Below, in pieces: positions 15,444 to 41,600 of a stretch of 64,000 nucleotides of DNA. Each line of letters opens with the position of its first letter. Positions within the stretch are counted from its first letter, which is position 1. Origin of the DNA: Ostrea edulis (lineage: Eukaryota); NCBI RefSeq assembly GCF_947568905.1, contig NC_079165.1:89156001-89220000 (forward strand), read 5' to 3'. The position numbers and the translations under genes were made by a program. The notes below the pieces were generated by a model, which did no database searches, had not been told where the DNA came from, and saw only the letters and a list, made by a program, of their open reading frames with translations.

Positions 15444-18400
15444 TGACACCCCCCCCCCCCCACCACCACCACCACCACAACCAAAACTATAATTCTACCA
15501 CTGTTACTTCTAAAACTACATTGGAATCTAAAAATATCAAAAATCAATAAATGTAATACTGTACCTCTTGTTAAAATGTACACTGGGGTCCACTCTAGAG
15601 GGGTCAGTGGTCAGTCTAGTGTTGTCTTTGTAATCACTGGACTTTTCAGGAATCTGGAATTTGGCTATCTGTACCTCTGTGTCACTCAAACCACCATGTG
15701 TTATACGGGCATAGCCCCGTCTGATTAATAAAATCAATTATTTCAATCATAAACTAGTCTCTTCAAATAGATGTGTCAGAATAAAAAAATTCCTCGTGAA
15801 TTCCATTTGTTCATTCATTCATTGTTAAATGATCAGGAATTTTGATGCTCCCTGATTGGTCCAAACAATCTTTTGTGGTGTGTACCTCAAAGTGAGTTCA
15901 CCTCAATATTAACGTTGGGAGGTTTATTCAGGAATTTCCCTCTTGACCAACCGTAGCTTTGCTGACATTGTTATCGACCAATCAAATTGCGTAATTTTTA
16001 GCATTTATCGATAAATAAAATTCGATGCAGTTAGCTTTACCAAACACCACCACGTAAATATGTGAGAATAAATTTTATCACTGTTATAGTTCCTAGATAA
16101 CTGTTGAAAAATTCCTGTCAGATCATTTAATAAAGGAATTATTGACTTTTGATTCCATCCACTCACAGCTATACAGACCTCATCAAAAGCCAATAATAGT
16201 ATATTGGTAGTATCATTCATGTAACACTAAAATGAAATCTATGTATACTGTACCAAAAACAGAACATTAGGGGCTGTGAAGAACATTATCATCATTTGAT
16301 TTTCTCCAACACTTAGCACTTACTTCTTGAGTCCTCTGTACATAATGTATTCACACCATCTGTCTCGGTCTGTCTCATCAATGTCCTTGACATTGCCATT
16401 TGTCAGGAGTTCATGGTAGTCACGACTACCGGGGGCAGAGGTCACATAGCCAAGGAAAACTACTGGATTTTTACTAAAAAACGAAAATAAATTTTAAGAA
16501 TGATTAGGTATAAGGAAAACAAGGTTTTCCTTTAGAAATGAAATAGTGTGTCTTTCATCACAATGTTTTACTAGGCACAAAATTTTATCTTTAAAGTTTA
16601 CCAATTTGATATCATATGATACTTGTGTTTTGATTTTGACCTAAATATACACATACTTGACCTAATTATACACCTGAATGAGTATTGACTTGAAAATAGC
16701 TCTGTTTGAGTCATGACATGTAGATATAGAATTCTCACATTGCTGCCACTTGATTCATCACTATACCACCATGCTTTGTCACAAACATTTAAATGCATAT
16801 TATCAAACTATCCATCAATAAGCTATACATTCTCTTTATGCCTTTGTCATATGGCCACATTTTCCAAATCAAAAAAAAAACATGGCGCTTTGACTGCACC
16901 TCTCTTCTTCCCTTTGTCTGAGTAATGACATGGATTTCACTCTGTCTGAGTAATGCAGGGCTTGAACCTAACTTTTTTTGTCACTAGTCCAGCCAGACTG
17001 ATCGGGGTATAATTTCAACCAGTCCGCAGAAAATTTACCAGTCCAACAGAGTTTTCCAGAAATAATTAAACATATTTAATTTCGTTAATGTTATTAAAAT
17101 GAAATTTAGCTCAATATGTCTCAGACAATATTGTAACACTTAAATGTGGGATTTATTTTTATACCCCCCCTCCCCCCCCCCCCCCCCCCCCCCCCCCGAA
17201 CAAAGTTCTGGGGGGTATATAGGAATCACTCTGTCTGTCCGTCTGTCTATGCAGATTCGTGTCCGGGCCATAACTTCTTTGTTCTTTGACTTAGGCATAC
17301 CATATTTGGCACACAGGTGGATCACCATTAGACGATGTGTCGAGTACTTTCATGACCTTTATATGACCTTGACCCCAAGGTCAAAATTAAAGGGTTTTTT
17401 TTTACAGTGGATTCGTGTCCGGGCCTTAACTTTTTTGTTCTTTGACATAGGGATACCATATTTGACACATGAGTGTATCACCATGAGACGATGTGTCATG
17501 TACCTTTATGACCTCCATATGACCTTGACCTCAAGGTCAAAATTAAAGGTTCTTACAATGGATTCATGTCAGGGCTATGACTTCTTTGTTCTTTGACATA
17601 GGCATATCATATTTGAGACATGAGTGTATCACCATGAAACGATGTGTCCAGTACCTTCATGACCTTTATATGACCTTGAACTTTTACCTCAAGGTCAAAA
17701 TTGATTATAGGATTTTGACATAGTCATACCATAAAACATGAGTGTATCACCATGAGACTATGTGACATGTACATTCATGACCTCTTTATGACCTTGACCT
17801 TTGATCTCTAGGTCAACATTATAGGTTTATGCCATGGATTTGTGTTCGGACTATATCTTCCATTTTCTTCTACAAAAGCATACCATATTTTTACACTCAG
17901 GAAAGAGGTAATTTATACCTATTAACAACACTCTTTGGGAGATTGGGGTAAGCAGGGGGTATTCTTAGTTAGCATTGCTCACAGTACCTCTACAGATCGA
18001 AGCATGCCAAATGTGTGTATAAGATTTCATAAGTATATGCTTTAGAAAATTAACCAGTCCCACTGGACTTACTAAAACAAATGTATGTCAGTCCGCCAGA
18101 TTTTTAACCAGTCATAGACTGACGGGCATATGTTAATTTCGAGCCCTGTAATGACATAGATATCACTCTGTCTGAGTAATGACATAGATATCTCTCTGTC
18201 TGAGTAATGACATAAATATCACCCTGTCTGAGTAATGACATAAATATCACCCTGTCTGAGTAATGACATAGATATCTCTCTGTCTGAGTAATGACATAAA
18301 TATCTCTCTGTCTGAGTAATGACATAGATATCACTCTGAGTAATGACATAGATATTGCTCTGTCTGAGTAATGACATAGATATCGCTGTCTGAGTAATGA

Positions 18401-21400
18401 CATAGATAACACTCTGTCTGAGTAATGACATAGATATCACTCTGTCTGAGTAATGACATAGATATCACTCTGTCTGTGTAATGACATAGATATCGCTGTC
18501 TGAGTAATGACATAGATAACACTGTCTGAGTAATGACATAGATATCACTCTGTCTGAGTAATGACATAGATAACACTCTGAGTAATGACATAGATATCAC
18601 TCTGTCTGAGTAATGACATAGATATCACTATGTCTGAGTAATGACATAGATATCTCTCTGTCTCAGTAATGACAGATATCACTCTGTCTGAATAATGACA
18701 TAGATATCACTCTGTCTGAGTAATGACATAGATATCACTCTGTCTGAGTAATGATATAGATATCGCTCTGTCTGAGTAATGACATAGATATTGCTCTGTC
18801 TGAGTAATGACATAGATATCACTCTGTCTGAGTAATGACATAGATATAACTCTGTCTGAGTAATGACATAGATATCTCTCTGTCTGAGTAATGACATAGA
18901 TATCGCTCTGTCTGAGTAATGACATAAATATCACTCTGTCTGTGTAATGACATAGATATCGCTCTGTCTAAGTAATGACATAGATATCACTGTCTGAATA
19001 ATGACATAGATATCACTCTGTCTGAGTAATGACATAGATATCACTCTGTCTGAGTAATGACATAGATATCATTTTGTCTCAGTAATGATATAGATATCGC
19101 TTTGTCTGAGTAATGACATAAATATCTCTCTGTCTGAGTAATGACATAGATATCACTCTGTCTCAGTAATGACATAGATAACACTCTGTCTGAGTAATGA
19201 CATAGATAACACTCTGTCTGAGTAATGACATAGATATCACTCTGTCTGAGTAATGACATAGATATCACTCTGTCTGAGTAATGACATAAATATCTCTCTG
19301 TCTCAGTAATGACATAAATATCGCTTTGTCTGAGTAATGACATAGATATCACTCTGTCTAAGGAATGACATAGATATCACTCTGTCTCAGTAATGACATA
19401 AATATCACTCTGTCTGAGTAATGACATAGATATAACTCTGTCTGAGTAATGACATAGATAACACTCTGTCTGAGTAATGACATAGATATCACTCTGTCTG
19501 AGTAATGACATAGATATCACTCTGTCTGAGTAATGACATAGATATCTCTCTGTCTGTGTAATGACATAAATATCACTCTGTCTGAGTAATGACATAGATA
19601 TCACTCTGTCTGAGTAATGACATAGATATCTCTCTGTCTGAGTAATGACATAGATATCACTCTGTCTGAGTAATGACATAGATATGTCTCTGTCTGAGTA
19701 ATGACATAGATATCACTCTGTCTGAGTAATGACATAAATATCACTCTGTCTGAGTAATGACATAGATATCACTCTGTCTGAGTAATGACATAAATATCAC
19801 TCTGTCTGAGTAATGACATAAATATCACTCTGTCTGAGTAATGACATAGATATCACTCTGTCTGAGTAATGACATAAATATCTCTCTGTCTGAGTAATGA
19901 TATAGATATCACTCTGTCTCAGTAATGACATAGATAACACTCTGTCTGAGTAATGACATAGATATCACTCTGTCTGAGTAATGACATAGATATCACTCTG
20001 AGTAATGACATAGATATCACTCTGTCTCAGTAATGACATAGATAACACTCTGTCTGAGTAATGACATAGATATCACTCTGTCTGAGTAATGACATATATA
20101 GACATCTGAGTGTAATATTGATCTAGATATTGACCTCTCTCTTAGCTCCTTAGCGAGGAATTTGGCTTGTAGTTTTCGGTCCAGCACATCTCTATCATTC
20201 CCCATGTGAGTCACCACAAAGTCGACATGCTTCCCTCCATAGTTCACAGTGGCGGTGATGGCTGGGGCGAGTTCCCCTGTAGAATTAACAAAGGTACTAA
20301 TGTCTTACAGAATCTCCACAAACATACCAACAATATGTCATTGTTGCACCCGGAGGCACTGATGATACAATATTAAGTTTTTAGATACTTCTGACTTGAC
20401 TTACTGTGTGGTGAGGGCAGCAGATGGTGGGTGGACTTGATTTACCGTGTGGTGAGGGCAGCAGATGGTGGGTGGACTTGACTTACCGTGAGGTGAGGGC
20501 AGCAGATGGTGGGTGGACTTGACTTACCGTGAGGTGAGGGCAGCAGATGGTGGGTGGACTTGACTTACCGTGAGGTGAGGGCAGCAGATGGTGGGTGGAC
20601 TTGACTTACCGTGAGGTGAGGGCAGCAGATGGTGGGTGGACTTGACTTACCGTGAGGTGAGGGCGGCAGATGGTGGGTGGACTTGACTTACCGTGTGGTG
20701 AGGGCAGCAGATGGTGGGTGGACTTGACTTACCGTGTGGTGAGGGTAGCAGATGGTGGATGGACTTGACAATTGGATACTTCGATAAAATTAGGTTCCTG
20801 TCAAAAATACAACACTTCATATACATGTAGCTAGCTCATTTATTAATTTTTTTTTCAATGTTATTTTATAAAGATACATGTTTGTGCAGATGTGTAAATT
20901 ATTTATATCCTAGTGTGTGTTTTGTTTTATACAGAATAAAGCTGTTCATCTCCTCCATGTGTGTTTTGTTTACAGAATTAAGTTGTTTACTTCCTCATTG
21001 TGTGTTTTCTTTACAGAACTAAGTGTGCATTTTGGTTGCAGGTCCAATAAACTAAATGAGTCATTTACCCCCAGGTGTGCGTTTTGGTTGCAGGTCCAAT
21101 AAACTAAATGAGTCATTTACCCCCAGGTGTGCGTTTTGGTTGCAGGTCCAAAGTCCACATACATTCCTAGCTTCTCTCCTAGCCACATCCCAAGGTCATT
21201 GTTGCCGAGGAACGGTTTGGAGGCATCGCTTTCCAAGAGGGTCACAAAATCTGCCCCTTAATTATTCATCAACAAACTTTAAAGTCTTAGTGCATGACAT
21301 GTATGTATTAGAACAGTGAAATTGTCTGAATGTGTCAATTACTGTACATGAAAAAAAAAATCACCATTTTAATCCTTAACAACACAAATGTGATAGAATT

Positions 21401-24400
21401 CAGACAAAAATCAATGGTGAGCTTTATAACTTCATGACAGATGCATCTTAAAAAATTAAGTTTGAATAAATTCATGCATTAAAAATTCTTTTCAAGAAAT
21501 CAACTTTGGAGCATTATGGATGTGTTGCTTTTCGTGTTGTAATCTCAGTTTCAAATTTCATCTTTAAAATATACATGAGGGTATGAATAGCGACACTTCA
21601 CACCTGCATATTTTATGAATGTCGATTTTGGTGGGCAAATGAATCCCTTATCGTAAACAGTCCTTTCACTTTATTACAGTTGTACCTGTTTCATTGATAA
21701 GTTTAGCTGAACGCTCCAGACTTGGCCAGCCTCTATTGTCATAACCAAAGTGATATGTCCATATCATAGCTGAAAATTCACGAGGCTCTACCTGCAAAAA
21801 GAATTAATGTCAATTTCATTGCTCTAATTGAAAAGTAGAAAGAAAAAAATATGAACAACATTTTAAAGTATTTTTCAGAATAATGATTCAGTTTCTATGT
21901 AATATTAAAGCTGTCCAATTCTACAGGGCAAATAGCACCTTCTTACTCTAAGATTTCTTCCTAGCTGCTCAAATCTTGAAAGTTTTGAAAACAAATTTTG
22001 GCTGGTACATAAATATTGTAAACAAAAACCTTAATTGTTCCATCATTATTATCAGTGATAGCAATTGCATGTCAAAGTTTGCAAACTGATTACACAAAGT
22101 CCACTATCTTAGAATGTTTAGTCATTTATCATCCAGGGGGCAATTACATGTCAAGCTCTCACTAGTGATTTGAGGAGACAATTCTTATACCTTTGCTGGA
22201 TGTGAGAATTCTTGTCGACGGTATCTTGAAGAAAACCCGGCCAAGCCAGAACACAGAATTGGCCCCAACACTGTCAAAACAGATTCCTTATTGTCCTTAT
22301 TTAAATAAGTTTAATAGTTGTAATACAAAAGTACAAAGTGAAAATGCATTATGTTTTTTTTAAAATGTGAAACATTGCCAGTTTCTAGACAAAAAATGAC
22401 GAGACACATTCATGCACTTCTAGTAAACTTACAAACATTGACTTTTAAAAGGGAAAACCTCTTCTTCTCAATAACGGGTAGAACTGTATGAGTCACATCA
22501 AAGGATTTACCTGAAAATATCAAGATATTTAAAACTCATTTTGATCTGATTTATTTCATACAATACTTCATACATACAAAGAATATTCACACTAAGTTAA
22601 TTCTTTAATTTAAAAAAAAAACTTCATTTTTACTGGCTTTTCCAGACTTTGAAATTAGCCACTTGTCTGAAGACTGAGTCCAGTAAAATTGGAGTTGAGC
22701 TTGTAAAAATATTAAAATACAAGACCATTAGGCCTGTGCTTTTTATCAATATTACTGTCATTCTGTTAAAATTATATAACCATACATCTAAATGGAGTGA
22801 TGATTGTATTCAGAATAAATAGTAAATATTGTGTTTATATCATAATCCTACAGTACTCTTGAATTCTCTATATTCAAAGTTCTTTTCATAACTGAAAATA
22901 TATATATATTGTGTATATAATTTAGACCAGTGAATTTTTTGTTGGTCTAGTAAACAGTTCAGATATAGAGGTCCAAATGGCTCCAAAAAAAATTTCATTA
23001 GCTTTTCAGATTAATCATATTTGAAATTAAATAACAGATAAATAGTAAAATCAATGTACAGTGCTCCCTCGATATAGTGACAACTTTCATTTAAAACGAA
23101 TTTGGGCAATAAAGCTGGGGTGGCATTATAATGAATTCACCATTATGGACAATTCACTGAGCAGTCAAAAGAAATTCAACACCATCAAGTTATTTGGACA
23201 CCATTCTGTATAAACATTTAGATTATCTTGAGTTTAGTTCTGCAATTATTAGTAATTAACCTGGCCACCTGAATACTTCCTCCAAACTGTCACACTTCAC
23301 CACACCACTATCAAAGTACAAGTGTGATTACTGATGGACAGTAGGTAATTGGCATTATTATCTAGGGTAAACCCTATAAAACTTGATCATTTGTTTGTGA
23401 AAATCAAAGGCATGACATTATGCTGGGTTGGCATTATAACGAGGGTGTTAACATGGGAGGAAACTGTTCTTTAGGATTTTCAGGCAATAAGAAGGGGTGG
23501 CATAACTGGCATTATAACGGGGTGCAATATATCAAGGGCGCACTGTATTTGTTTCATACCGATGAAGAGTCCTATATATATCCCCAACATCACAGCTGCA
23601 ATTAGATAATCTGTATGCTCTCTTGTGTAAACACCACCCGGCACAAAATTATACGCCACAGTCCACACAAAAAAGAAGATCTCCACCAGATAGGTTACCA
23701 CAGCAACCACCAGTGACCTTGATGGGGGGCATCGACTGACTCTGTCTGTCATTTCTGGCCAGATGGACATGGTATACACAGCTAATATTAGGCCACCTGT
23801 TGAAATAAATATGCTGCCATGTAAACACAAAATTTTCCATATGACTTATTATGACCCACATAATCAAAACATAACGTAATTCCAAAGCAAAATTAACACA
23901 AGTACTAGAAACAGCCCTCTCTGAATTTTCTTTTTGGGACCTCCCAAAAACAACAGAATAAAAAATATCAGAGAGGGCTACATTATTGCAGCTAGTATAC
24001 AAAATTGAGTACCAGAAAGGATACACGATATGCTCATCACAAGCTTATGTAGGGTGTTTGTATTAAGGTGTTTGTTTTCTAAGACATTGATTACCAAACA
24101 TGGCAAAAATCCCACGAATTGTAGAACTTTACTTAAGTTAGTATCAGCCATCATAAAGCTGTGACATACACCCTATGTAATATTTCCTCAAAATTGATTA
24201 AGTCCAACAACCTGTAATTTTTTTTAAAAATTCAAGAAAATAAAATTCTTGCCATATGCACATCTTCAATACTAATACAAACACTCTGTGAAACAAGGAG
24301 GTCCTAAGTTGATAACTGCTGCCCTACATGCCTAAGGTGTAACGGATTGTAAGTAAGTTGAAAACGGTCATCATCGATGGAAAACGGTGGGAGGAGTTAA

Positions 24401-26936
24401 GTACAGATGTACCCATGAAATAAAGGAATATCAAACATTCTCCATTGCATAAGACCTGACACACACGACACATGTTTCTTGGATATTGTGCATTTCATAT
24501 TACATGATTGCTCCTCATGGCCCCTAACCTGCATATCCCTGATAGGTCGGTAGGTAATACAGCCCAGCCAATGAAAAGACACCGATCAGCCACCAAATCT
24601 TGCTCTGTGCTACATGACGACAAGCTGACATGTAAAATCCCAGCACGAGACACAAAAATACCCCAACTCTGGAAATATACACAGCAAACAATTACAAAAT
24701 GTCAGATCTCTAAAGCAATGGGTTTATATGCATTGTTTCAAGTATACACTATTTACACATGTTAAAAATCAAATTTCTGTGCCATGTCTTCAGAAATAAA
24801 TTACCCCCAAGGATATGGCATTGGTCCATGCTCAGGAAATCCTGTCACCACCCATCTGGTAATCAAAGACACCTCCCCAAAACACCAATGTGTCACATAG
24901 ATAAGACTGCCGAATCCAATGGCTGTTGGGAGCCAGTAGGGCTGCTCCGGCCTGTCTTTGTCTCTCTTGTTTATAGAGTCTGATCCTGTTGTCAGATGTT
25001 AGAAGTATAATGTAACACTGGAAAGCTCATAGGTATGTTTCATATTTGTTGCTCTCATAGATGACAGTGCATATTTATATCTCTCTCAGAGTGTCACAAA
25101 GTCAAAGTTACACAAAAAATAAAATGTACTCCAATCAGAAATAAATTCCCTTGTATAAGAAATCAATAGCTCTTAATAGTTATTGATAATGGTGTTTCTA
25201 AAAAAAAATTTAGAATTCAAAGATTTACCTGACAGTATCTGATCTATGGTGGAAATGGTGGCTAATGCAATGACCGCAGAATTTGTCTGTTTGCTCCACC
25301 ATGTGGGTATGAAAGAGACAAACCACACTCTGCTGGTGACCAGGGACAGAAGTCCCAGGAAAAGCCCCCAGAATGTAGAAGACCTGGTTAAAAGTTTTCA
25401 ATAGTCATGTGATAATACTAAATAGGTATTTCATAAACTATCCATTTTGAAAAACAAAGTACTGAACATTGTTCCTATATTTGACCCTAAAAAAGGGCAA
25501 GTCAAATATAAGCATTTTCCCCATTACTGTATGGGTACTTATTTGGCACAGTCATAACTAATACATTATTTGGCTTAATCATGATTAAGAACTTTTACTA
25601 TGCATGATAAACAGATAAATAGAAATTTTCATATTTTAGTGATACATGTACCATAAATTGTGTAAATGCTTCTTGTCAAAGCCACTAAAATTTTAATCCA
25701 TTAAAATATGTACAAGCATGGTATGTAAAAGAAAAGAGACTGCCATGTGTCTGATGAATAATCATGAATTAAATACCAGCATCCTGTAATGATGCATTTT
25801 ATGTGTATGATGTCATCATTCAGGAGGACTTTCCAATATATTTGTCGAAAAAATGAGAAATTGTTGCAGCATCAATATGCAAGCAGCAACTCTGTTGCAA
25901 GAGAATAATAAAAATGGCAGGTACAGTACTTGTTTGGAGAACCTTTAGAATTAGTCATTATCAGACATAAGTATCCATATCTAACCTTATTTTGACATCT
26001 GGACTCCAAAGTGTGGCTGCTATTACTAACATTGACACACCAGCTCCCCCTGCAAGAATCATCAGTCTGGTCAGAGTTGTGGGCGCCTGAAACGAGGCCA
26101 AAGATCCCACCATCAGAAGCCGTAGCAGCCCAAGGACCCAGCGGTTCTGAACCAGTGACATCATGCCTGGTATACCCAGGAGAATAGGGCTGAACCATGT
26201 GGCAGCAAATGCCTCATACCCAGATATGTCAAGTTCGTTCAATGGATAGAACCATATCATAGGCCCCATACCTTGGAACAGTGACCAGAAAACATAACCT
26301 ACAAAAAAGATCTTTGGATTATTATCAACAAACAACAATTTGTTCCCCAATATGACTGTCATGCATATTTTCTGTATCAGCTATATATACACCATTATAA
26401 AGAACTATCCAAAGTCTATGTACAACACTTTTATCAGTGTTAGGTATTAATGCCTGTTCGTCAGCCTAAGACAGACAAATAACTGTGAGTATCTACATAC
26501 TCAAAGCATAGTCTGACCATTGTGCCAGTAAAAAGCAAACTCATGCTTGCTTTAAATCAATGTGAAAAAAATTTCTCTGAAAATCAGATTATGACTGTCA
26601 TTTATCACTGTCTGATATTTCTGAATTTTCCAAATGAATGGTAAAAATTAAACAATACATTTACATTTTATCTTGAGTCACCCAGACTGTCACCAGAACT
26701 TGGCTGAAGGACAAAAAAATCATGTACTCTACATGTTACTGGCCCTTTGAACAAGCGAGTTCTAATGCCAAGTTATGAAGATTGACTGCCTGCATATAGC
26801 CAATGACGTACATTACATGCAAGAAAATAGCCAATGTGCAATAGGTACTATATAATGTCAGGTCAGGAAAACACGAGATATTCACCGGCATACCCTTATT
26901 CCGCATTTTCTCAAAGGAGGAACCGGTAGTGGCCAT
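15071..26936 (-). CDS. CWH43: PGAP2-interacting protein / CWH43 (GPI lipid remodelling), 15 exons, 687 aa
   Basis: Exons: 26894-26936 (least certain), 25986-26298, 25229-25383, 24805-24985, 24529-24668, 23560-23796, 22433-22510, 22191-22270, 21686-21791, 21121-21256, 20733-20797, 20135-20276, 16324-16473, 15565-15720, 15071-15152 (TAG). Total 2064 nt, phases consistent. Hallmark peptides: [77 protein letters not shown]. Confidence 0.95.
15213..15445. mobile_element. Abundant SINE-like interspersed repeat
   Basis: Inverted homolog at 29150-29405 (TTTCACTCATATGGAGAC...TTCTAACCC core). Confidence 0.65.
16956..18148. mobile_element. TIR element (CAGGGCTTGAA...TTCGAGCCCTG) with 5-bp TSD TAATG, inserted into the 27-bp satellite
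   Basis: TAATG at 16951-16955 and 18149-18153; satellite units on both sides; second copy starts at 28787. Confidence 0.8.
17155..17990. mobile_element. HINE-like element nested in the TIR element
   Basis: TTTTTATACCCC start, internal GACCTTGACC/AAGGTCAA tandem units, GGGGGTATTCTTAG...CACAGTACCTCT end; absent from the homologous position in the 28.8 kb copy. Confidence 0.7.
18149..20105. repeat. 27-bp satellite, about 72 copies (GTAATGACATAGATATCACTCTGTCTGA), in a CWH43 intron
   Basis: Direct reading; two orphan units at about 16905-16955. Confidence 0.97.
20394..20768. repeat. 41-bp tandem array, about 9 copies, made of a CWH43 exon end plus splice donor
   Basis: Donor G at 20404, 20445, 20486, 20527, 20568, 20609, 20650, 20691 and 20732. 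Confidence 0.97.
21023..21150. repeat. 52-bp tandem duplication (about 2.4 copies) of a CWH43 exon end plus donor
   Basis: CATTTAC at 21062-21068 and 21114-21120. Confidence 0.93.
23059..23545. mobile_element. Tc1/mariner-type (pogo/Tigger-like) MITE
   Basis: TIRs CAGTGCTCCCTCGATATA / TATATCAAGGGCGCACTG, flanked by TA on both sides. Confidence 0.75.
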
Positions 26937-27421
26937 ACAAATCAATATATATTATTTGACATTCGTCACATCTCACCATTTATAGTCTCGCGGACAAGTG
27001 TCCGATAGGAATGTAACTGGTTTTGTTCCACCATGTTCTATGCCTATGAATTATGCATTTAATCCATCGGGGGCCTGACCAAAGAAGAAATGTAAACAAC
27101 GAAATCACTCAGACGCTTAAAAAAGAAAACGATCGGAATGAATTTCCCCGGTGTGTCCCATCCCCTTTTTTTCATTTCATTTCATTTCAGGAGTTAAATT
27201 ACAATATGTTATCATGATTTTTTTAAACAATGAACTTAAAAAGTAACTCTCACGTTCACTGATTGAAATTTTGCGATTTATTTAATCTTTATGAAAAGTT
27301 CTGCAGTTTATCGTCAAACATTTCGTTCACCGAGATTTTTCCAACGACTTCCGGCATTATTTTGGGTTCTCTAACATCGGCTGCGCAGGATGATGAAATA
27401 GTAACAGTTCAAATAACGCAG
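26937..27421. promoter_or_regulatory. Putative bidirectional promoter between CWH43 and ALG5
   Basis: 485 bp between divergent predicted start codons; locally CpG-richer than flanks. Depends on the CWH43 first-exon call. Confidence 0.55.
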
Positions 27422-30400
27422 ATGGATGTTTTATTGATGCTGCTGTCCCTTGTGGGCGTGGCAGTTACTTTAGCAATTTGTGTAAGTACATACCACACTT
27501 TAAGGATTTGTTTTACAATTAACCTGTAGCTTATCAGATGTCATCATCTAATGCATGATGACATTAGAACCGAATCTTGCAACTGCAAGCGTAACATATG
27601 TAAGAGACTGTTGTCAGTTTACATACTTTCAACAACTCTATAGCATAGTCTTATCAGGCTGTGCGTATGGAACAATTTGAAATGGGCTAAATGTTTTAAT
27701 TGTGGCGGTCAGCCGGGTTCGATCGCCGGTGGCCAGTTAGCTCGGTAGAACGCCTGGATGGGGATTCGGGTTCGAATCCCGGTCTGGTCCGTTGCATTTT
27801 CTCCCTTCGTGTTACATTTGGTGCCGTATACCAGCCCCTGGAACTAACAGGTGAAAATGCCTGCTTGGGGATTTAAGATCCTGGGTTGATGTGATTATTG
27901 TCTTTTGGTGTGAAGACATTTAAGGAGGGAGGAATGTGGCGGTCAGCCAGGCTCGATCGTCGGTGGCCAGTTAGTTCAGTTGGTAGAGCACCTGGCTGGG
28001 GATTCGGGGGGGGGTTGAATCCCGGTCTGGCCCATTGCATTTTCTCCCTTCCTGTTACATAGTCAAACGCACTCTTAGTTAGAACATTTCGACGGGATGC
28101 TTACTCATCTTAGGCACAGGGTTTTGACACAATCTGAGCAAACTGGTATACATGTACATAGTGCTCACTATATATACCAGTTTGCTCAGATTGTGTCAAA
28201 ACCCTCTGATCCCATCTCTGGTTTGTCCAGGCCAGGGGTCCTTGTTTACCCTACTCTTAATTTTGTATCCTAAATATAGGAGCTATTAGATTGATCTCTG
28301 TTCGTTTTCGTCACCTTTTCATTATCTAGGTACTTTTTAAGAAATCAAATTAAAAGAAAAAAAGAAAGAAAACAACCAGGAGGAAGGGCTATCTAATTGA
28401 TGTACATATGGTGTGTACATTGTGAGATTGTGTTCAAATCAGTGATTTTCAAAACATTTTATGGAAAATACAAGCAATAGAACAATATGTAGTTATTGAT
28501 AAAGACATTTTAAAATATTTCAATTTAATTTATTACATAAAACTGTCAAGTGAGGTAATTATTTTATATTGATTGTTGAAACACTCTTCAAAAAATATTC
28601 TAGTCTGAGGCAAGAAAACATAGAAATGAAATTTAGATATAAGTATTTGAAATCAGTGTGCACATGTTCATGAGATCGATCTGTGTACTGGACGTGCAGA
28701 TTGTCTTTGGAAATTACTGGTGTGTGGGTACGTATTGCTTTTTGTATCACTTGCCCCCTCCCCAAATAGATTGATTGATTGGTTATCAGGGCTTGAAGGT
28801 AACTTTTTATATCACCAGTCCAGCCGGACTGATGGGGTATAATTTCAACCAGTCCACAGAAAAATTTACCAGTCCAACAGAGTTTTCCAGAAATAATTAA
28901 ACATATTTCATTAATGTTCTTGAAATGAAATTTAACTCAATATGCCTCAGAAAATATTGTAACACTAATGTGAGATTTATGTTTATTAATCGGGTTCGTC
29001 TAATAACAGAAGCATGCCAAATATGTGGATAAGATTTCATAAGTATATTTTCCAAAATGATGCTTTAAAAATTTAAACAGTTCTATCGGACCGACTAAAA
29101 CAAATGTTGGTCAGTCCGCCAGACTTTTAACCAGTCACAGACTGACAGGATATTGTTTAATGTCCCTCTTGAGAATATTTCACTCATATGGAGACGTCAC
29201 CACTGTTGGTGAAGGGCTGCAAAATTTAGGCCTATGCTCGGTGCTTGCGGTCTTTGAGCAGGGAGGGATCTTTATTGTGCCACACCTGCTGTGACACAGG
29301 ACCTCGGTTTTTGTGGTCTCATCCAAAGGACCGCCCCATATAGTCGCCTCTTACGACAAGCAAGGGGTACTGAGGACCTATTCTAACCCGGATCACCAAA
29401 GGACCCCCAAATAGAAGTGGTTTTCATACAGCATGAACTTAGGTAATGCTATTTGTCTAGCCCTAAAAAGTAATCCCATTTCATATTGCAGGCGTTAATT
29501 ATTGTGGCCATGTCAACGAAGCCATATCCAGATTTAGGAAGGTATGAGACTGAGAAATATTTTTTAAATGAGAAACACGAGAAGTGTCTGTTCCCATCAA
29601 TCAACGACCCAGCCAGTGTGGAGCTTTCGGTGATTGTACCAGCATACAACGAGGAGGAGAGATGTACGTATATTATATTGAAAACTTCATTCAGACTAAT
29701 TCATTAACATGATTAATGGATAAATTAGTAAATAGCCGATTTCTTTGTAGTACCAGTTATGATGGATGAAGCATTAGGATTTTTGGAGGATAGAAAGGTA
29801 TGTTTGTTATAGATCCAAAGATAATCATATCTTGGAAGTTAGTCAAACTTTGTCAAATTATCTTTTTGGTCCAAAGTGAAATTTGGGTACATTTGAATAT
29901 TGGTTTACAGTAATGTGAGAGAGTATGTCTTTCATTTTGTTATTAAGGTGTTTTTCTTTGTACTTAGAAAAAATCCAGATCCTTTAGTTATGAGGTGATT
30001 GTTGTCGATGATGGAAGCAAAGATAAAACTACACAAGTAAGTCACATTGTTTTATTCTGCTTGAATTTGATGGATTTATAATTTTTCAGATTTAAGTTCA
30101 TTTTTAGTTGTTTTCCCCCCTAAACAATAAAGATAAGTGTTTAGAACATTAAAAAGACTTTTGCATTTTTTGGAAAAAGAATTAAATTGATTTTCATATT
30201 TTCCAGACAGCACAAAGTTATTGCAATAAATATGGATCTGAAAAAGTGCGTGTGTTGACTCTAGCAAAGAATCGTGGGAAAGGTGGTGCCATAAGATTGG
30301 TCAGTAAACATTACTAAATCGCTGTTACACAGTAATTAATATACAGAAAGATCTTTCTTTGTTCAGATAGGACAGTGTAATGATATTTCCGTGTATGAAT

Positions 30401-33400
30401 GAATGTAACCAATGTCTCTGTGTCTTCCCAACAACTTCTCATAATTTTCACTCTGATTAAAATCAAACCTCTCACTCAATATACGGACATGCAGCGATTG
30501 TCTGTATATTGAGTGAAGTGAGAGGTTTGATTTTGATTAGACTGCATCATTTTATTTTATTTTGTTGATTGTTTTAAGTTTTGGCATTTCACAAGTGTAA
30601 TAATTTTTATCAGGGAATGTTTTCTGCTCGGGGACGATTCCTGTTGTTTGCAGATGCCGATGGTGCAAGTAAATTTAGTGACTTTACAAAGCTGGAGAGT
30701 GAAATGAAGAACGTAAATAAGAATAGTACTAACAGGGCAGTGGTGTGTGGTTCTCGGGCACACCTGGAGGAGGAGTCAATCGCACAGGTAAACACAGGAT
30801 AAATTCACTCAGTTACACAGGTAACACAGGTGATGTCAGTTACATAGGTAAACACAGGATGTCAATCCCACAGGTGAACACAGGATCCATGTCAATCACA
30901 CAGGTAACACAGGATACATGTCAATCACACAGGTAACACAGGATACATGTCAATCACACAGGTAACACAGGATACATGTCAATCACACAGGTAACACAGG
31001 ATACATGTCAATCACACAGGATACATGTCAATCACACAGGTAAACACAGGATACATGTCAATCACACAGGATCCATGTCAATCACACAGGTGAACACAGG
31101 ATACATGTCAATCACACAGGTAACACAGGATACATGTCAATCACACAGGTAACACAGGATACATGTCAATCACACAGGATACATGTCAATCACACAGGTA
31201 ACACAGGATACATGTCAATCACACAGGATACATGTCAATCACACAGGTAAACACAGGATACATGTCAATCACACAGGATACATGTCAATCACACAGGTAA
31301 CACAGGATACATGTCAATCACACAGGATACATGTCAATCACACAGGTAAACACAGGATACATGTCAATCACACAGGTAAACACAGGATACATGTCAATCA
31401 CACAGGATACATGTCAATCACACAGATAACACAGGATACATGTCAATCACACAGGATACATGTCAATCACACAGGATACATGTCAATCACACAGGTAACA
31501 CAGGATACATGTCAATCACACAGGATACATGTCAATCACACAGGTAAACACAGGATACATGTCAATCACACAGGTAAACACAGGATACATGTCAATCACA
31601 CAGGATACATGTCAATCACACAGATAACACAGGATACATGTCAATCACACAGGATACATGTCAATCACACAGGATACATGTCAATCACACAGGATACATG
31701 TCAATCACACAAATCACACAGGATACATGTCAATCACACAGATAACACAGGATACATGTCAATCACACAGGTAACACAGGATACATGTCAATCACACAGG
31801 ATACATGTCAATCACACAGATAACACAGGATACATGTCAATCACACAGGTAACACAGGATACATGTCAATCACACAGGTAACACAGGATACATGTCAATC
31901 ACACAGGATACATGTCAATCACACAGGATACATGTCAATCACACAGGTAACACAGGATACATGTCAATCACACAGGTAAACACAGGATACATGTCAATCA
32001 CACAGGATACATGTCAATCACACAGGATACATGTCAATCACACAGGTAACACAGGATACATGTCAATCACACAGGTAACACAGGATACATGTCAATCACA
32101 CAGGTAACACAGGATACATGTCAATCAAGGTAAGATGAAGTGTGGGTTCATCATAAGTCTTGCTAGATGCCTCGCCTCCTCATGGATTGTAATGTACATT
32201 TTCAATGTGGAGGATAATTGACAGAGAAAGACTAGATGAGGACTTTGAAATTGAAATTTGTAAATGACAGTCCTAAAATTTTGATAATCATTAGATGTGA
32301 GCAGTCTGGATATTCTTAAGGTGAAATACACTCTCACACAAATATATACACATACACACACATGAATATGCTATATAAATTCAGGAGTTGTCTTCCTTTA
32401 TGAAATGATGACTTGAAATTTGCATGAAGGAGTTACATTTCTTTATAAAGACAGTTGATCAAAATTAAAATTTTTAGTGCTTATATTTTATATTCTACAA
32501 TTACCCAAGGCTACATCTGGGAGACAGACCCAGGTCCTCCCCCCCCCCCCCCCTTAAGCTCATTATCCTAAACTCCTACTGCTTTTATTGAGGCCAAGCA
32601 CATCTGTTATTTGATGCACTAATAACTGTATGCAGAATGCCAATAAAAATTATGGATACAAAATATATGCTTGTGCAATTATCAATTGCTATCGTATATT
32701 AATACACAATATGACATAATAATTTATGCTTTTTGTTGTGTACAACGAAGTTTCAAATATTTCAGTGCAACCATAAATTTGCACTCTTGCTTCAGTGCCA
32801 AGGGTGCTCGAGTATAAAGCCCACTAGAATAAAAATACACACATTTAAATTAGTACATTTTATATGCAAAAATATTGGGGTTTTTTTTTTACAGCAGTTG
32901 ATTACAGTATCTATGACTGCGATTTTTATGGTTTGAATTTGCACTTTCTTTCCAGAGATCTATGTTTAGGACGTTCTTGATGAAAGGATTCCACTTTGTG
33001 GTGTGGTTTCTGTGTGTGCGAGGAATCAAGGATACACAATGTGGATTTAAACTCCTGACAAGAGAGGCAGCAATCCTTCTCTTCTCCAATCTACATGTAG
33101 AGAGATGGTAAGATTGATTTTAACTCCTAACAAGATAGACAGCAATATTTACATGTAGAGAGATGGTCAGATTGATTTTAACTTCTGACAAGAGAGGCGG
33201 TAATCCTCCTCTTCTCCAATCTACATCTTGAGAGATGGTAAGATTGATTTTAACTTCTGACAAGAGAGACGGCAATATTTACATCTAGAGAGATGGTCAG
33301 ATTGATTTTAACTCCTAACAAAATAGACAGCAATATTTACATCTAGAGAGATGGTAAGATTGATTTTAACTTCTGACAAGAGAGACGGCAATATTTACAT

Positions 33401-36400
33401 CTAGAGAGATGGTCAGATTGATTTTAACTTCTGACAAGAGAGGCGCAATCCTCCTCTTCTCCAATCTACATCTAGAGAGATGGTAAGATTGATTTTAACT
33501 TCTGACAAGAGAGACGGCAATATTTACATCTAGAGAGATGGTCAGATTGATTTTAACTTCTGACAAGAGAGACGTCAATATTTACATCTAGAGAGATGGT
33601 CAGATTGATTTTAACTTCTGACAAGAGAGACTGCAATATTTACATCTAGAGAGATGGTCAGATTGATTTTAACTCCTAACAAAATAGACAGCAATATTTA
33701 CATCTAGAGAGATGGTCAGATTGATTTTAACTCCTGACAAGAGAGGTGGCAATATTTACATCTAGAGAGATGTAAGATTGATTTTAACTTCTGACAAGAG
33801 AGGCAGCAAACCTTCTCTTCTCCAATCAACATTTAGAGAGATGGTAAGATTGGTTTTGATGATTTTGGTCTAGGGTGCAAGGATATTGAATCACAATACA
33901 AAGGTCTGGATTTTATATCTGCAATTTTTATTAATTAGAAAAAACTTAGCAAACAAGACAGGTAATGGAAAAGAAGCATACAAGTTACAAAGAAAATGTG
34001 TGCCAATGCAGAGCTACATGAATCATTATACATACACCCGAGTCTGTTGGTTTGATATGTTTGAAACTTTCCATCAGATAGAACAGACTGTAACTGGATA
34101 ATTGCCTGTGGTTCATCACGTAATTTATAACAGTGTGTTGTTTTTACAGGGCCTTTGATGTAGATAGGCTGTTCCTAGCTCAGTACTTTATAACCATGTG
34201 TTGTTTTTACAGGGCCTTTGATGTAGATATTCCCAGCTCAGTACTTTTAACCAATTGTTATTTTTACAGGGCTTTTAATGTAGATAGGCTGTTCCTAGCT
34301 CAGTACTTTATAACAGTGTGTTGTTTTTACAGGGCCTTTGATGTAGATAGGCTGTTCCTAGATCAGTACTTTATAACTGTGTGTTGTTTTTACAGGGCCT
34401 TTGATGTAGATAGGCTGTTCCTAGCTCAGTACTTTATAACAGTGTGTTATTTTTACAGGGCCTTTGATGTAGATAGGCTGTTCCTAGCTCAGTACTTTAT
34501 AACAGTGTGTTGTTTTTACAGGGCCTTTGATGTGGGTACCTGTAAAGTGCGAAACGAAACGAAACCCACCGAAATGAAACGAAGCAGATTGAACAACCGA
34601 ACTCTTTTAATTATAGTAATTAAAAATGGTATTTTAGGCCCCTGTGAAAGTTACCACATACAAATAAAATTTGCCTCCCTTTTGATGTAGGCTTTGGGCT
34701 TGACTGTTACAAAGTTTTAAAAATTGGAATGGGGGGGGGGGGGGGGTTGGGGGGTTGAGTAAGCAAAACGTACATATCCGAAGTTGATTAAATACCATGT
34801 ACAATTGGTTTCAGATCCATAAATTTCAGAACGGAGGGTTACAGTCTCACAGGTCAGAGGTCATAACGAGGGGTGGGGTCGCCGGCGCTGGATCCGCCTT
34901 TGGGCATAAATACATGTTTCAGTGTTTTTTGCTCTAAAGACAAATCTATGTATACATGTGGATATTGTGTATTTGTATGTAGTATATCAAACAGTGGATT
35001 CTGAGTATGTCCTCCCGTTCTCTTTGTAATTTATGCTTCCCTTGTTCATAAGCCTTTTGATTTTACAAAATAGCTGACTTCCTCCTGATATTATTGCATA
35101 AAACAATTTCCGTTTTCCGTCCCGTTTTCAATTTCACGTCTTAGCAACACCCCAAATGTATAGAGTTATCTTTAGACTCACTACATATCAATAATAATTT
35201 TTAATAATACATGTATATATATCTTACCGAATTGCATTCATATAATATGGTATACTATTTAATTTATTTCATTATTGAAAGTACTCGCACCTAAGCAGTT
35301 AGAGATAAAATGAGAGGTTAAGAGCTCTTCCTGCTTTCAACTTTCTCAGACACCAGCTTCTTCAAACAATGTATCTATACCCAAAGGCGGATCCAACGCC
35401 GGTGACCCCCACCCCCTCGTTTAGTGTGTTTCCCCAGACCTCTGAGACTGTAACCCTCCGTTCTGAAATTTACTGATCCGAAACTAATTTCACATGGTAT
35501 TTAATCAACTTCGGATATGTACTTTGTCCTTACTCACCCCCCCCCCCCTCCCCACTTCCAACTTTTAAAACTTTGTATCAGTCAAGCCCAAAGCCTACAT
35601 CAAAGGGGAGGCGAATTTTATTTATCTGTTGTAACTTTCACAGGGGCCTAAGATATCATTTTTAATTATTTTAATTTAAAAAGTTCAGTTATACAATCTG
35701 TTTCGTTTCGGTGGGTTTCATTTCGTTTTGGTAGATTTCGTTTCATTTCGGTAGATTTCGTTTCGTTTCGATCTTTACAGGTACCCCCTTTGATGTAGAT
35801 ATGCTGTTCCTTGCTCAGTACTTTAAAACTGTGTTGTTTTTACAGGGCCTTTGATGTAGATATTCCAGCTCAGTACTTTTTAACAGTGTGTTGTTTTTAC
35901 AGGGCCTTTGATGTAGATATGCTGTTCCTAGCTGAGTACTTTATAACTGTGTGTTGTTTTTACAGGGCCTTTGATGTAGATCTGCTGTTCACCTAGCTCA
36001 GTACTTTATAACAGTGTGTTGTTTTTACAGGGCCTTTGATGTAGATCTGCTGTTCACCTAGCTCAGTACTTTATAACAGTGTGTTGTTTTTACAGGCCTT
36101 TGATGTAGATCTGCTGTTCACCAAGCTCAGTACTTTATAACTGTGTGTTGTTTTTACAGGGCCTTTGATGTAGATATTCCCAGCTCAGTACTTTATAACA
36201 GTGTGTTGTTTTTACAGGACCTTTGATGTAGATATTCCCAGCTCAGTACTTTATAACAGTGTGTTGTTTTTACAGGGCCTTTGATGTAGATATTCCCAGC
36301 TCAGTACTTTATAACTGTGTGTTGTTTTTACAGGGCCTTTGATGTAGATATGCTGTTCCTAGCTCAGTACTTTATTACTGTGTGTTGTTTTTACAGGGCC

Positions 36401-36760
36401 TTTGATGTAGATATGCTGTTCCTAGCTCAGTACTTTAACATTCCAGTAGGAGAGGTAGCCATTACCTGGACAGAAATTGAAGGTCTGTAAACTGTTCATT
36501 ATATCTGTAATTTCTTTTGTCTGATTCCCAGTGTTTTGTCCGCAATACGCTGTATCAATGTATTTATATGCTACCATTGTTTCTATCTCCCCCATAATAC
36601 AAACAATCTATGCATATTTTATCAATTTCCATTTTTTATTTCAGGTTCAAAAATGGTTCCTGTTTTTTCCTGGATTCAGATGGGCAAGGACATTATTTTA
36701 ATACGACTGCGATATTTTCTAGGAGCATGGAAGATTAACCAGAAATCCAAAGTAGAATAA
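27422..36760 (+). CDS. ALG5: Dolichyl-phosphate beta-glucosyltransferase, 9 exons, 322 aa
   Basis: Exons: 27422-27481, 29492-29663, 29751-29797, 29968-30036, 30207-30299, 30614-30787, 32956-33107, 36397-36482, 36645-36760 (TAA); 969 nt. GT2 motifs: [66 protein letters not shown]. Confidence 0.97.
27701..28059 (+). mobile_element. TRIM with tRNA-like LTRs (Helenus-type)
   Basis: TGT..ACA LTRs at 27701-27816 and 27935-28059; PBS TGGTGCCGT; PPT TAAGGAGGGAGGAA; A/B-box-like motifs in LTRs; flanks TAAT/TAGT. Confidence 0.8.
28090..28322 (+). mobile_element. Retroelement 3' remnant homologous to 13110-13305, interrupted by a hairpin insertion
   Basis: Sequence correspondence with the 13.1 kb copy. 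Confidence 0.55.
28118..28205. mobile_element. 88-bp hairpin insertion with perfect 33-bp arms and a 22-nt loop
   Basis: AGGGTTTTGACACAATCTGAGCAAACTGGTATA and its exact reverse complement. Confidence 0.85.
28787..29150. mobile_element. Second, truncated copy of the CAGGGCTTGAA TIR family
   Basis: Colinear with 16956-17150 and 17995-18120. Confidence 0.75.
29150..29405. mobile_element. SINE-like interspersed repeat (homolog of 15213-15445)
   Basis: Shared sequence of about 230 bp. Confidence 0.65.
30788..32127. repeat. 20/29/30-bp satellite in ALG5 intron 6, derived from the exon 6 end plus donor
   Basis: Unit GTCAATCACACAG-GTAA(A)CACAG-GATACAT versus the true junction GTCAATCGCACAG|GTAAACACAGGATA. 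Confidence 0.95.
33108..33852. repeat. 58/72-bp tandem array (about 12 copies) of the ALG5 exon 7 end plus donor
   Basis: The long unit reproduces about 60 nt of the exon (CTCCTGACAAGAGAGGCAGCAATCC...GAGAGATG) plus GTAAGATTGATT. Confidence 0.95.
34128..36435. repeat. 58-66-bp tandem array (about 17 copies) of the ALG5 intron 7 acceptor plus exon 8 start
   Basis: Unit TGTGTTGTTTTTACAG|GGCCTTTGATGTAGAT...CTCAGTACTTT; the last unit is the real exon. Confidence 0.95.
34534..35786. mobile_element. Non-autonomous Mutator-like (MULE) foldback element
   Basis: About 390-bp imperfect TIRs starting GGGTACCTGTAAAG / CTTTACAGGTACCC; 10-bp TSD CCTTTGATGT at 34524-34533 and 35787-35796. Confidence 0.85.
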
Positions 36761-37315: not shown

Positions 37316-37692
37316 TGTAGTAATTAGGGCTATACAGACCATGGATATCGGCCTGGATAGCTCAGTGGTTAGAGCACCTGACTAGTAATGCAGGGGTCAC
37401 GGGTTCGATTCCCGGTCCAGTCAAAGATTTTCTCCTCTCCTATACTACATTTGGTGCCGTTGACCACCCCTGGTGGTGCAGGTTGGCCTGCCAGGGGCGA
37501 AATGAACCTGGGTTGATCTTGAAAGACAATTATAATTGATCTTAAGGAGGGAGGAATGTAGTAATTAGAGCTATACGGACTGTGGATATCGGCCTGGATA
37601 GCTCAGTGGTTAGAGCACCTGACTAGTAATGCAGGGGTCCCGGATTCGATTCCCGGTCCAGTCAAAGATTTTCTCCTCTCTCTTATACTACA
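37316..37692 (+). mobile_element. TRIM with tRNA-Thr(AGT)-like LTRs (Helenus-type)
   Basis: LTRs at 37316-37449 and 37557-37692 (TGT..ACA); PBS TGGTGCCGT; PPT TAAGGAGGGAGGAA; perfect 4-bp TSD TAAT. Confidence 0.9.
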
Positions 37693-38145: not shown

Positions 38146-38637
38146 AGTGCATATGTCGTGCAAGATATCGAGGCCAACTCACTTACAAGGATAATTACTT
38201 ACGGTAAAAGTGTTTGTTGGAATGTAGTAAATATCAGTATTTTTGTATTTAAAAACCTTTCGTTTCTTGTAATTACATTGAATTCAACCTTAGAGTGCAT
38301 ATACTGATGAAAGAAAATAAAAAGGATATTTTCTCAGAAATTCGCAATATCACTCCTGTAGCTGAAATATGAACCTAAATGAAAAGCAGTTTTGTTCATG
38401 TTTTTTCTTCTTCAATATTTGCTGCTCAGATGAGAGGTTACTCTTCAATACAAATTTTTCACTAGTTGTTATCAGTTCAATACAAACGCAATAACATTGA
38501 AATATATTTAATAACTAGTAAGAATTAAGAACACTTCTGCTTCAATGAAATAACAAATCAACATGTGTAAAATGCAATGTAAAAGATTAGTAGTATCTCT
38601 GTAAAACAAAGCGTAATACCGTAAAAATAATCGTTTC

Positions 38638-41600
38638 ATAATGTACATAAACGGATATATAAAACGGCTACCAGTTAATGACGATGCCTATGATGTGGAT
38701 GTAGCAGTTGGGGAAAGACACAGTAGAGATAAGACTTTAGATAGTAGAGGAAAAGAATTATTAGAATTATGTATTGCAAACAAGCTTAGAATAGCCAACG
38801 GTAGAACATTTGGTGATATATATGGGAAATTTACATGTCATAATTATGCTGGTTCCAGTGTGGTAGACTACTTCATTGTATCTGAACAGTTGTTAGAAGA
38901 TGTCTTGTATGTACATGTATCTGATTTTTTACCTTTATCTGACTGCCATTGTAAAATCTCAATGAAACTTTTATCATCATTTGAAAGGGAGTATACATGT
39001 GACAACATGCAGGAGATGCCCAAACGATACAATTGGGATAGTTTATCTATAGGAAACTTTCAAAAAATTTTCATGCATCCAACCGTTCAGAATGATATAA
39101 AGCTTTATTTAAACACACCGATAGAGTATAATGAACAAAGTATAAACAAGGCCACCAACGACATTCACAAAATCCTAAACAAAGTAGCTAAACTATCTTT
39201 ACAAAGAAAAACACAACATAGAAACACAACCAATAAAAAAGAGAAAATACTTATTTGAGAAAGCAACTTTACTTTCAAGATTTCCCAATAACCCTTACTT
39301 ACGAAGTTCCTTTTTCAAATTAAATAAGGAATATGCCAAGCTGCGGAAACGTAAAAAGCGAGAATTCAGGCAGGGTATTCTAGATAAACTAGATCAAATG
39401 AATGAAACTAATCCTAAAGAATATTGGAAATTAGTTAAATCGCTTCGCGAAAATGAAGGGAAAAAAGATAATTTAGAGAAGTGTATTGATGGGGATACAT
39501 GGTTTGACTATTTTACTTCTCTGTCTAAATTACCAGATCATTACAAGGACAGAGTTAAGACTATAGAAGCCGGAATTAATAAACTTAAAAATAGCCAGAC
39601 CTGTAAGTCGTTTAGCAAATTGGATTTCAAGATATCTTTGTCTGAAATTCAAAAGGCCATATCTACTTTAAAGTCGGGTAAAAGTCCTGGTTTAGACAAC
39701 ATCTCAAATGAAATGATAAAAGCAGCTCAAATATATATAAATCCTTGTATCTCAAAACTATTCAATATGGTCTTAACATCAGGAATCTATCCAGAAAAAT
39801 GGTTAGAAGGTTATACAACACCCATCTTTAAATCGGATAATCCAAAGCTCCCCCAAAACTATAGAGGAATAACTATAACTAACAGCATAGCGAAACTTTT
39901 TAATATCATTTTTAACGGCAGGCTTGATACATTCTTAACTGAAAACAAAATAATACACGAGAGTCAAATAGGATTTTCAAAAAAACCAGGACATTTATTT
40001 GTAGTTAAATGTTTAATTGACAAATACATTAACACTGGCAATAAACGACTCTATGCATGTTTTGTAGACTTTCACAAGGCATTTGATACCGTCATTCATG
40101 AAGGCATTAAACTAAAACTCCTACAATTAAATATCAATGGTTTATTCTACAACATATTATGTAGTATGTATAGGCACAACAATATTTTCATAAAAGTAGG
40201 GAACAAGTTAACCCTTCCATATACACCAGAGATAGTTCGTCAAGGTGATGTCTTAAGCCCAAATATTTTTGAACGATTTTTCCAAATTACTGGATGAAGA
40301 AACCATTGGCTCTATCAATCTTTCTGGAAAGAAAATCACCTCTCTTCTATATGCGGACGATTTTGTACTGCTTTCAGAAAACCAAAATGGACTACAAAAC
40401 AAACTAAACTTACTTGAAAAATATTGCAACGATTGGTGCTTAGAAATTAATACCATTAAGACAAAAGTAGTCATTTTTAATAAAAGCGGACACCTAATTA
40501 AAGAAAATTTTGTGTTCGGTAACATACGTATTGAATGTACTAACAAATATTATCCTCCTGTGGTTCATTCAAGGAAGCAAAATCTGATCTATACAATAAA
40601 GCTCTTAAGGCCTCATTCAAACTTTATAAAGACATCAAATCTATCGATCCACCAATTAAAACATTTTTGCATCTTTTTGACCATATGGTAAAACCCATCG
40701 CCTTGTATGGCTGCGAGATATGGGGAACACTCTCAACACGCATGCTGGAAAAAGACAGAGATTTATATATCTTTAAAAATTGGGAGGTAGAAAACCTGAA
40801 TATTAAGTTTTGTAAACATCTACTGGGTGCCGGTAAAAGAAGTACTAATATTGCAATAATCTCTAAATTGGGTAGATATCCTATGTTCTGCTCTATAATC
40901 CAAAGTATTTTAAAATACTATATTGGCATAGACTTGAGAATTGCCCAGAATCATCCCTGTTATACAGTGCTTACATGTATATAGAGAATATCAATCTGAA
41001 TTCATATAATATAAATTGTTGGTACAAAAACATTAATTACTTTAAGGAAAAAATTGGCATTTTGGTACCCAATTGTAAAAATCTCAAATTCTCATTTTTC
41101 AAAAAACAAATGAAGAATCAGGTACGGAAACAATTTTTACTTTACTGGTCAAAACGACGTGAAGAGGGTCAGAAATCAGGAAAACTCACAACATATTTTT
41201 CGTATAAAGAAAACTTTACTATGGAAAGTTATATATTTTTAGAATCCCTAGAATTAAGAAAAACTCTATGTAGATTTCGAATTAGTGCACATGACCTTCG
41301 AATTGAAAGAGGAAGATATGAATTTACAAAAACCAATTCTGGCCAGAAGATTTCTTTAGAAAGAAACAAAAGAATATGTGAATTATGTAACCTTAATTGT
41401 GTTGAAGATGAATTTCATTTCCTTACTGATTGTCCATTCTATGTTGAAGAGAGAAATATGTTTTTTAATGGTATATACAAGCTCAACAAAATTTTTATCT
41501 ATCTAACAAATAAGGACAAATTTACTTGGTTGATGATTAATGAAGACAAACCAGTAATTGTCAAATTGAGTGAATATTTAGTGCAAACTTTCAGAAAAAG

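Follow-up and report, generated by a model that had tools for sequence, protein, structure and literature searches.

Tandem arrays spanning exon-intron junctions in two neighbouring oyster genes resemble the mirages of amphioxus

Two neighbouring housekeeping genes in the window (the whole 64,000-nt stretch of DNA analysed here) carry five intronic tandem arrays, three in ALG5 (A to C) and two in PGAP2IP (D and E), in which the repeat unit consists of the edge of an exon together with its splice site. Each array began as a short local tandem duplication (29-72 bp) that included the exon edge and the splice site. The arrays later grew and shrank, as recorded by homogenised inner units, edges that remain like the original, differences in copy number and transposon landings. 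We confirmed that, in the window, arrays A to E are real and unstable. They are of a known kind, the "mirages" of amphioxus, in a new phylum and at an unusual density within the window. We propose that they are mirage-type, junction-spanning VNTR minisatellites, which local duplication and unequal exchange leave behind as by-products that evolve fast and are tolerated, and we give this reading a probability of about 0.65.

Two genes and the arrays at their exon borders

The two genes lie head-to-head, and both this arrangement and the exon lengths are conserved in Magallana gigas, Crassostrea virginica, Saccostrea echinata and S. cucullata. ALG5 (dolichyl-phosphate beta-glucosyltransferase; 27422..36757, + strand) was delineated with the ALG5 proteins of oysters as tblastn queries, which its exons match at 82-97% identity, and has nine coding exons, a CDS of 966 nt and canonical GT/AG sites throughout. 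Its identity is 82-83% to the proteins of M. gigas and Saccostrea and 78-79% to that of C. virginica, which places the window in another oyster lineage. The 13 coding exons of PGAP2IP (the CWH43 C-terminal homologue; 15540..26380, - strand) are supported by Pfam matches (PF23022, PF23021 and PF23226), a CDS of 682 codons that is open throughout, RNA joints and synteny. Exon borders were set by orthologous proteins, together with RNA joints and the conservation of exon lengths. The protein collection contains no full-length ALG5 protein from the window's own species, and the best matches there are from Saccostrea and Magallana. The exon 7 ORF of ALG5 had no exact match, and the exon 9 ORF matched that of another oyster species, which has no arrays.

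Using TRF, we located all five arrays at the places given in an earlier note on this DNA, which, from the sequence, had read each unit as the border of an exon joined to its splice site. Across arrays A to E, the copies match the authentic junction unit at 69-100% identity, and about 63 decoy sites keep their GT or AG. Array A (30775-32127, + strand) starts in exon 6 of ALG5 (30614-30787) and consists of ~51 units of 29, 30 or 20 bp, built from the last 13 nt of the exon and 16 nt of intron. Its first unit contains the authentic donor (30787/30788), 26 decoy GT donors are found in the array, and the 20-bp units are without GT. Array B (33044-33851, + strand; 33044-33857 in TRF) comprises 13 units of 72 or 58 bp, formed by the last 64 nt of exon 7 (32956-33107) and 8 nt of intron, with the authentic donor at 33107/33108 and 12 decoy donors (five GTAAGA and seven GTCAGA). 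The donor is lost or weakened in half of the array A units and in most of the array B units.

Array C lies on the acceptor side of ALG5 exon 8 (36397-36482), and its units combine the first 40 nt of this exon with 23 nt of the preceding intron. The distal half (34127-34533, + strand; 34120-34533 in TRF) has 6.2 units of 57-63 bp that cover the acceptor region and the exon start. The proximal half (35787-36436, + strand; 35787-36437 in TRF) has 10 units of 57-65 bp and terminates with exon 8 and its authentic acceptor (36396/36397). Together the halves hold 17 acceptors, of which 16 are decoys and one is authentic. They are split by a foldback/MITE-like DNA transposon (34534..35786, 1253 bp) with terminal inverted repeats, inverted arms of ~380 nt and a 9-bp target-site duplication, CTTTGATGT, and they have since diverged into different unit subfamilies. 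Intron 7 of ALG5 is affected at both ends, by array B on the donor side and by array C on the acceptor side.

In PGAP2IP, array D (20393-20764, - strand; 20393-20769 in TRF) has nine 41-bp units (x9.2 in TRF), each made of the final 32 nt of exon 10 (65 nt, 20733-20797) and 9 nt of intron, and carries eight decoy GT donors besides the authentic one (20733/20732). Array E (20914-21149, - strand; 20914-21151 and 52 bp x2.5 in TRF) is built from 29 nt of exon 9 (21121-21256) and 23 nt of intron, and has a single decoy donor. Beyond two identical 52-bp units and a partial third lie 41-bp copies of the exon 9 junction that are older and degenerate and align to the unit with a score matched by only 2 of 2000 shuffles. 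In every array the authentic exon is the end unit, as the earlier note had pointed out; an intact CDS makes this inevitable.

A sixth array, F (18149-20148, - strand), has ~70 units of 28 bp and begins next to the exon 11 donor of PGAP2IP (exon at 20135-20276, donor at 20135/20134). Two further 28-bp units are found at 16912-16955, beyond a terminal-inverted-repeat element (16956..18148; ~1.19 kb, CAGGGCT...AGCCCTG, flanked by TAATG) that splits the array and contains internal 156-bp repeats. The junction matches the unit at 22 of 30 positions and in register (P ~0.03 before the register constraint), and the copies nearest to the junction are degenerate, yet also in register. Given this marginal P, array F was retained on the register alone, and it is probably junction-derived like arrays A to E. 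A separate 30-bp x2 repeat (2407-2474), located 25 nt past the donor of another gene, was checked and is not junction-derived.

Turnover and lineage history

Contigs from five other short-read runs match the window over 1.5 kb at 98.5-99.9% identity and therefore belong to the same species. Among these contigs, the proximal edge of array A recurs as two haplotypes. In one contig (L001), exon 6 is followed by only ~4 array A units and then by the same unique intron sequence found in the window, so that array A, the array genotyped, varies in length from ~4 units to ~51 in the assembly. Contigs of the DNA-like runs reach both array edges, and word depth rises 2.5-5-fold there.

The arrangement of unit variants tells of turnover as well. 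The first and last units of array B are both of the 72-bp type and 93% alike, and the inner ones are mostly 58-bp deletion variants. Similarly, the edge units of array D have CACCACACG in common and its inner units carry CACCTCACG. Edge units that are most alike, around inner units that have been homogenised, are the usual mark of turnover by unequal exchange. Expansion and turnover within introns, next to CDSs that remain open, bear out the proposal that such duplications spare the coding sequence and can expand. The further proposal that microhomology drove them agrees with direct repeats of 7-9 nt at the array ends, but the last, incomplete unit of any array has the same appearance.

Four other oysters provided 160 orthologous junctions, among which we found no strong arrays except at the ALG5 exon 6 donor, and a weak echo of the junction at only three. 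Arrays B to E are absent in four or five other oysters and are specific to the window's lineage. At the exon 6 donor, S. echinata has ~7 units of ~33 bp, each with a CAG/GTAAAC-like junction, and M. gigas has a single decoy copy 22 bp downstream (1 of 5000 shuffles in each case). The M. gigas decoy retains bases that are exonic in other oysters and have since been altered in the M. gigas exon. Because the decoy keeps these former exon bases, the comparison suggests an old duplication at this donor, which some lineages kept and expanded. At the same donor, a 20-bp repeat in S. cucullata appears junction-like by eye but is without significance, and C. virginica has no junction-like repeat.

The earlier note had also raised intron gain and exon duplication as possible outcomes. 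We found that the positions of all 20 introns agree across five oysters, with conserved exon lengths and no new intron position. Intron gain is not supported, and neither is exon duplication; no unit contains a whole exon. NMD-coupled regulation, a third outcome named in that note, is likewise without support.

Splicing at the arrays and parallels in other animals

RNA contigs from two runs of a close relative (~2% divergent in exons and 4-5% in introns), which may or may not carry the arrays, join 20276 to 20733 and 20797 to 21121 in PGAP2IP. Both joints use the authentic, most upstream donors and remove arrays D and E whole. No decoy joints are listed for the PGAP2IP stretch in these contigs, which drop rare isoforms and whose evidence on splicing covers arrays D and E. 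From the reading frames, read-through from a decoy donor is predicted to meet a stop at once (arrays B and E) or within four codons (array A), and use of a decoy donor in array D would add 41 nt and shift the frame. Decoy donor use would hence be unproductive, by frameshift or immediate stop. The nearest decoy acceptor of array C, in contrast, precedes a 63-nt in-frame unit with no stop and is predicted to add 21 residues.

We hypothesize that the arrays grew by replication slippage or unequal exchange. The spliceosome would keep the copy attached to the exon, that is, the most upstream donor or the most downstream acceptor, as the RNA joints partly support. If the exon-attached copy is the one used, the remaining copies would leave as intron and the arrays would be tolerated. 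They would then have no dedicated function and would be by-products that lengthen ancestrally short introns several-fold. With up to 26 intact decoy donors or 16 intact decoy acceptors by one used site, the arrays offer a natural experiment on spliceosome choice. Array C on the acceptor side is the sharper case, as the authentic acceptor could not be picked there by simply taking the first AG past the branch point, and the need to choose the last acceptor over 16 identical ones upstream counts against the by-product reading. Junction arrays are also an annotation hazard, because they give rise to spurious exons and isoforms and to collapsed assemblies.

The earlier note left open whether such arrays had been described in bivalves, and in the literature searched we found no report of junction minisatellites in bivalves. 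The kind is, however, already on record in amphioxus and in human genes. Mirages, originally described by Canestro et al. 2002 (NAR, as cited in PMC3087553), are known in the amphioxus genes for Adh3, globins BflGb6/9, troponin C and PGBD5, and consist of an intron/exon border, on its 5' or 3' side, copied in tandem like a minisatellite, with units of 10-160 bp (PMC3087553, PMC3902484). They are polymorphic between haplotypes and undergo concerted evolution from which the edge units are exempt; their AG/GT are often kept, and splicing is undisturbed (PMC3087553, PMC3902484). Somatic instability is reported for the Adh3 mirage. The authors consider mirages possibly general in cephalochordates and have proposed them as a model of intron gain (PMC3087553, PMC3902484).

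Like mirages, the oyster units span the border, with the authentic exon at one end and the other copies intronic. Many GT/AG sites are likewise kept, at least one array is polymorphic in length (array A), and the edges have been spared homogenisation (arrays B and D). Unlike mirages, the oyster arrays occur in a mollusc, reach ~51 copies, number five or six in two adjacent genes, affect both ends of one intron and contain transposons.

In humans, the first monomer of a minisatellite spans the exon-intron boundary in F7 IVS7 (37 bp), IFI6/6-16, CBS IVS13, LMNB2 and PDGFA (PMC1557585). The authentic donor is located in the first unit and is followed by identical pseudo-donors in polymorphic VNTRs; F7, LMNB2 and PDGFA use the most upstream donor, F7 via a scanning-type process (PMC1557585). 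The oyster arrays share the position of the authentic splice site in the end unit, with decoys beyond it. In contrast to the human cases, which are isolated and on the donor side only, the oyster arrays are clustered and include one on the acceptor side. The RNA contigs of the close relative, for arrays D and E, also show no use of a proximal pseudo-site of the sort known from IFI6 and CBS.

A third comparison is with the Rogers model of intron gain, in which an exon segment containing AGGT is duplicated in tandem (PMC3265369, PMC4974935, PMC2891723). Here, too, local tandem duplication supplies extra splice signals. In that model both copies are exonic and an intron is born, whereas in the oyster the intron pre-exists and the copies lie inside it. 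Minisatellites of the mouse pseudoautosomal region (PMC13050634) were considered as a precedent and rejected, as they are not junction-based.

Chance, targeting or function

Whether uniformly placed local duplications suffice as an origin depends on how often they would span a junction by chance. For the null model, the arrays were collapsed to one unit, the two transposons were removed, and duplications of the observed unit lengths were placed uniformly along both genes, with placements entirely within exons dropped. In these collapsed gene models a random duplication spans a junction with a probability of 0.09-0.245, depending on unit length. Finding at least five of the six non-transposon arrays at junctions has P = 4e-4, and finding all six has P = 1e-5, both being post hoc values from a window picked for the pattern. 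The earlier claim of a non-random process thus holds locally, with the reservation that the test came after the fact. Orthologous introns in other oysters measure 82-1078 nt, and those of the window are ~115, 120, 306 and 830 nt once collapsed. Such short ancestral introns raise the chance baseline, but the junction excess persists. Uniform origin predicts 9-25% junction-spanning arrays against the five to six of six found, which leaves part of the bias unexplained and counts against the by-product reading.

This bias could be due to a mutational process aimed at junctions, with breaks or template switches that favour exon-intron borders and seed tandem duplications there far more than elsewhere. 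One possible cause is the sharp fall in homology between haplotypes from conserved exon to divergent intron in a hyper-polymorphic genome; another possibility is damage linked to transcription or splicing. Besides the local excess, the strong non-junction repeats in the introns of both genes point in this direction, being all transposon-borne or dispersed SINE-like copies, as does the fact that the ALG5 exon 6 donor has also been hit in S. echinata and M. gigas. Amphioxus is extremely polymorphic. It is also the sole other animal group in which such arrays have been suggested to be general (PMC3087553).

Set against targeting, unit ends are not anchored to the splice site, and the junction may fall anywhere within the unit. 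The echoes at the junctions of the four other oysters are both weak and rare, and the window was selected for the very pattern in question. A low-threshold ungapped echo scan (score >=12) gave no junction excess (8 of 200 junctions compared with 10.7% of intronic anchors), a class swamped by chance matches and by repeats from the 28-bp array and from transposons, such that only the class with score >=20 is informative. We regard targeted mutation as possible but doubtful. Comparably tentative is the specific proposal that the oyster, like amphioxus, may have border-specific seeding of duplications, for example by strand exchange that is aborted or re-aligned at a "homology cliff". If seeding were border-specific, junction minisatellites would form a class found throughout the genome and specific to the lineage, through which introns grow longer and gain decoys. 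Should the excess prove genome-wide, and common to oysters and amphioxus but not to most animals, it would point to a hitherto undescribed way in which introns grow and structural variants arise in marine invertebrates that are highly polymorphic.

A selected function is improbable. Under that explanation, the banks of decoys would recruit U1/U2AF to tune splicing, provide down-regulation coupled to NMD, or serve as raw material for exons or introns. GT or AG is intact in most decoys, the nearest decoy acceptor of array C would extend the protein in frame, and proximal pseudo-sites are used in human IFI6 and CBS (PMC1557585). However, the arrays are lineage-specific, and array A ranges from ~4 to ~51 units between individuals. 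The decay of donors in arrays A and B, the transposons within two arrays, the exclusively authentic joints in the RNA contigs of the close relative and the lack of any unit with a whole exon likewise argue against selection.

Finally, it is very hard to credit that the arrays are artefacts of assembly, produced by the collapse or inflation of repeats: copy numbers do rest on the assembly, as short-read contigs break within the arrays, but the units have structured variants and higher-order periods, two arrays contain transposons with target-site duplications, the edge of array A recurs, haplotype differences included, in contigs of the five other runs, and word depth is raised at the array edges.

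Lengthening of the PGAP2IP exon 11-12 intron

The intron between exons 11 and 12 of the minus-strand gene PGAP2IP spans 3661 nt in the window (16474-20134), compared to 82-313 nt in five other oysters (for example, positions 3676-3757 of L011, an oyster locus without arrays). Nearly all of the extra length is accounted for by the 28-bp array beside the exon 11 donor and one transposon. Located within this array is a 1.19-kb element (16956-18148) with terminal inverted repeats (CAGGGCT.../...AGCCCTG) and TAATG on its flanks, for which the four other oyster loci gave no match. A 156-bp repeat, present in 2.8 copies, and a C34 run are part of this element.

The ALG5 exon 6 donor in other genera

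Junction-like repeats at the ALG5 exon 6 donor are also found in two other oyster genera, represented by S. echinata (L009, 13516-13700) and M. gigas (L006, 12458-12490). Because the M. gigas decoy retains exon bases still present in other oysters, the duplication at this donor may be old.

Mobile elements in and around ALG5

Array C, the tandem array at the ALG5 exon 8 acceptor junction, contains a foldback/MITE-like DNA transposon (34534-35786) that is bordered by a 9-bp target-site duplication. Its terminal repeats begin GGGTACCTGTAAAG; it has inverted arms of ~380 nt and poly-G/C in its interior. A SINE-like dispersed repeat is present as two neighboring copies in ALG5 intron 1 (27700-28060) and as a related copy downstream of the gene (37400-37473); its GAATCCCGG motif suggests that it may be derived from a tRNA. 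Just downstream of ALG5, long plus-strand ORFs (38617-41625), whose translations resemble endonuclease and reverse transcriptase, probably represent a non-LTR retrotransposon.

Features near the start of the window

A 30-bp tandem repeat (2.1 copies, 2407-2474), located 25 nt past the donor of a minus-strand exon (about 2491-2646), is not junction-derived. Positions 3840-3978 are 139 consecutive Ns (gap or masked).
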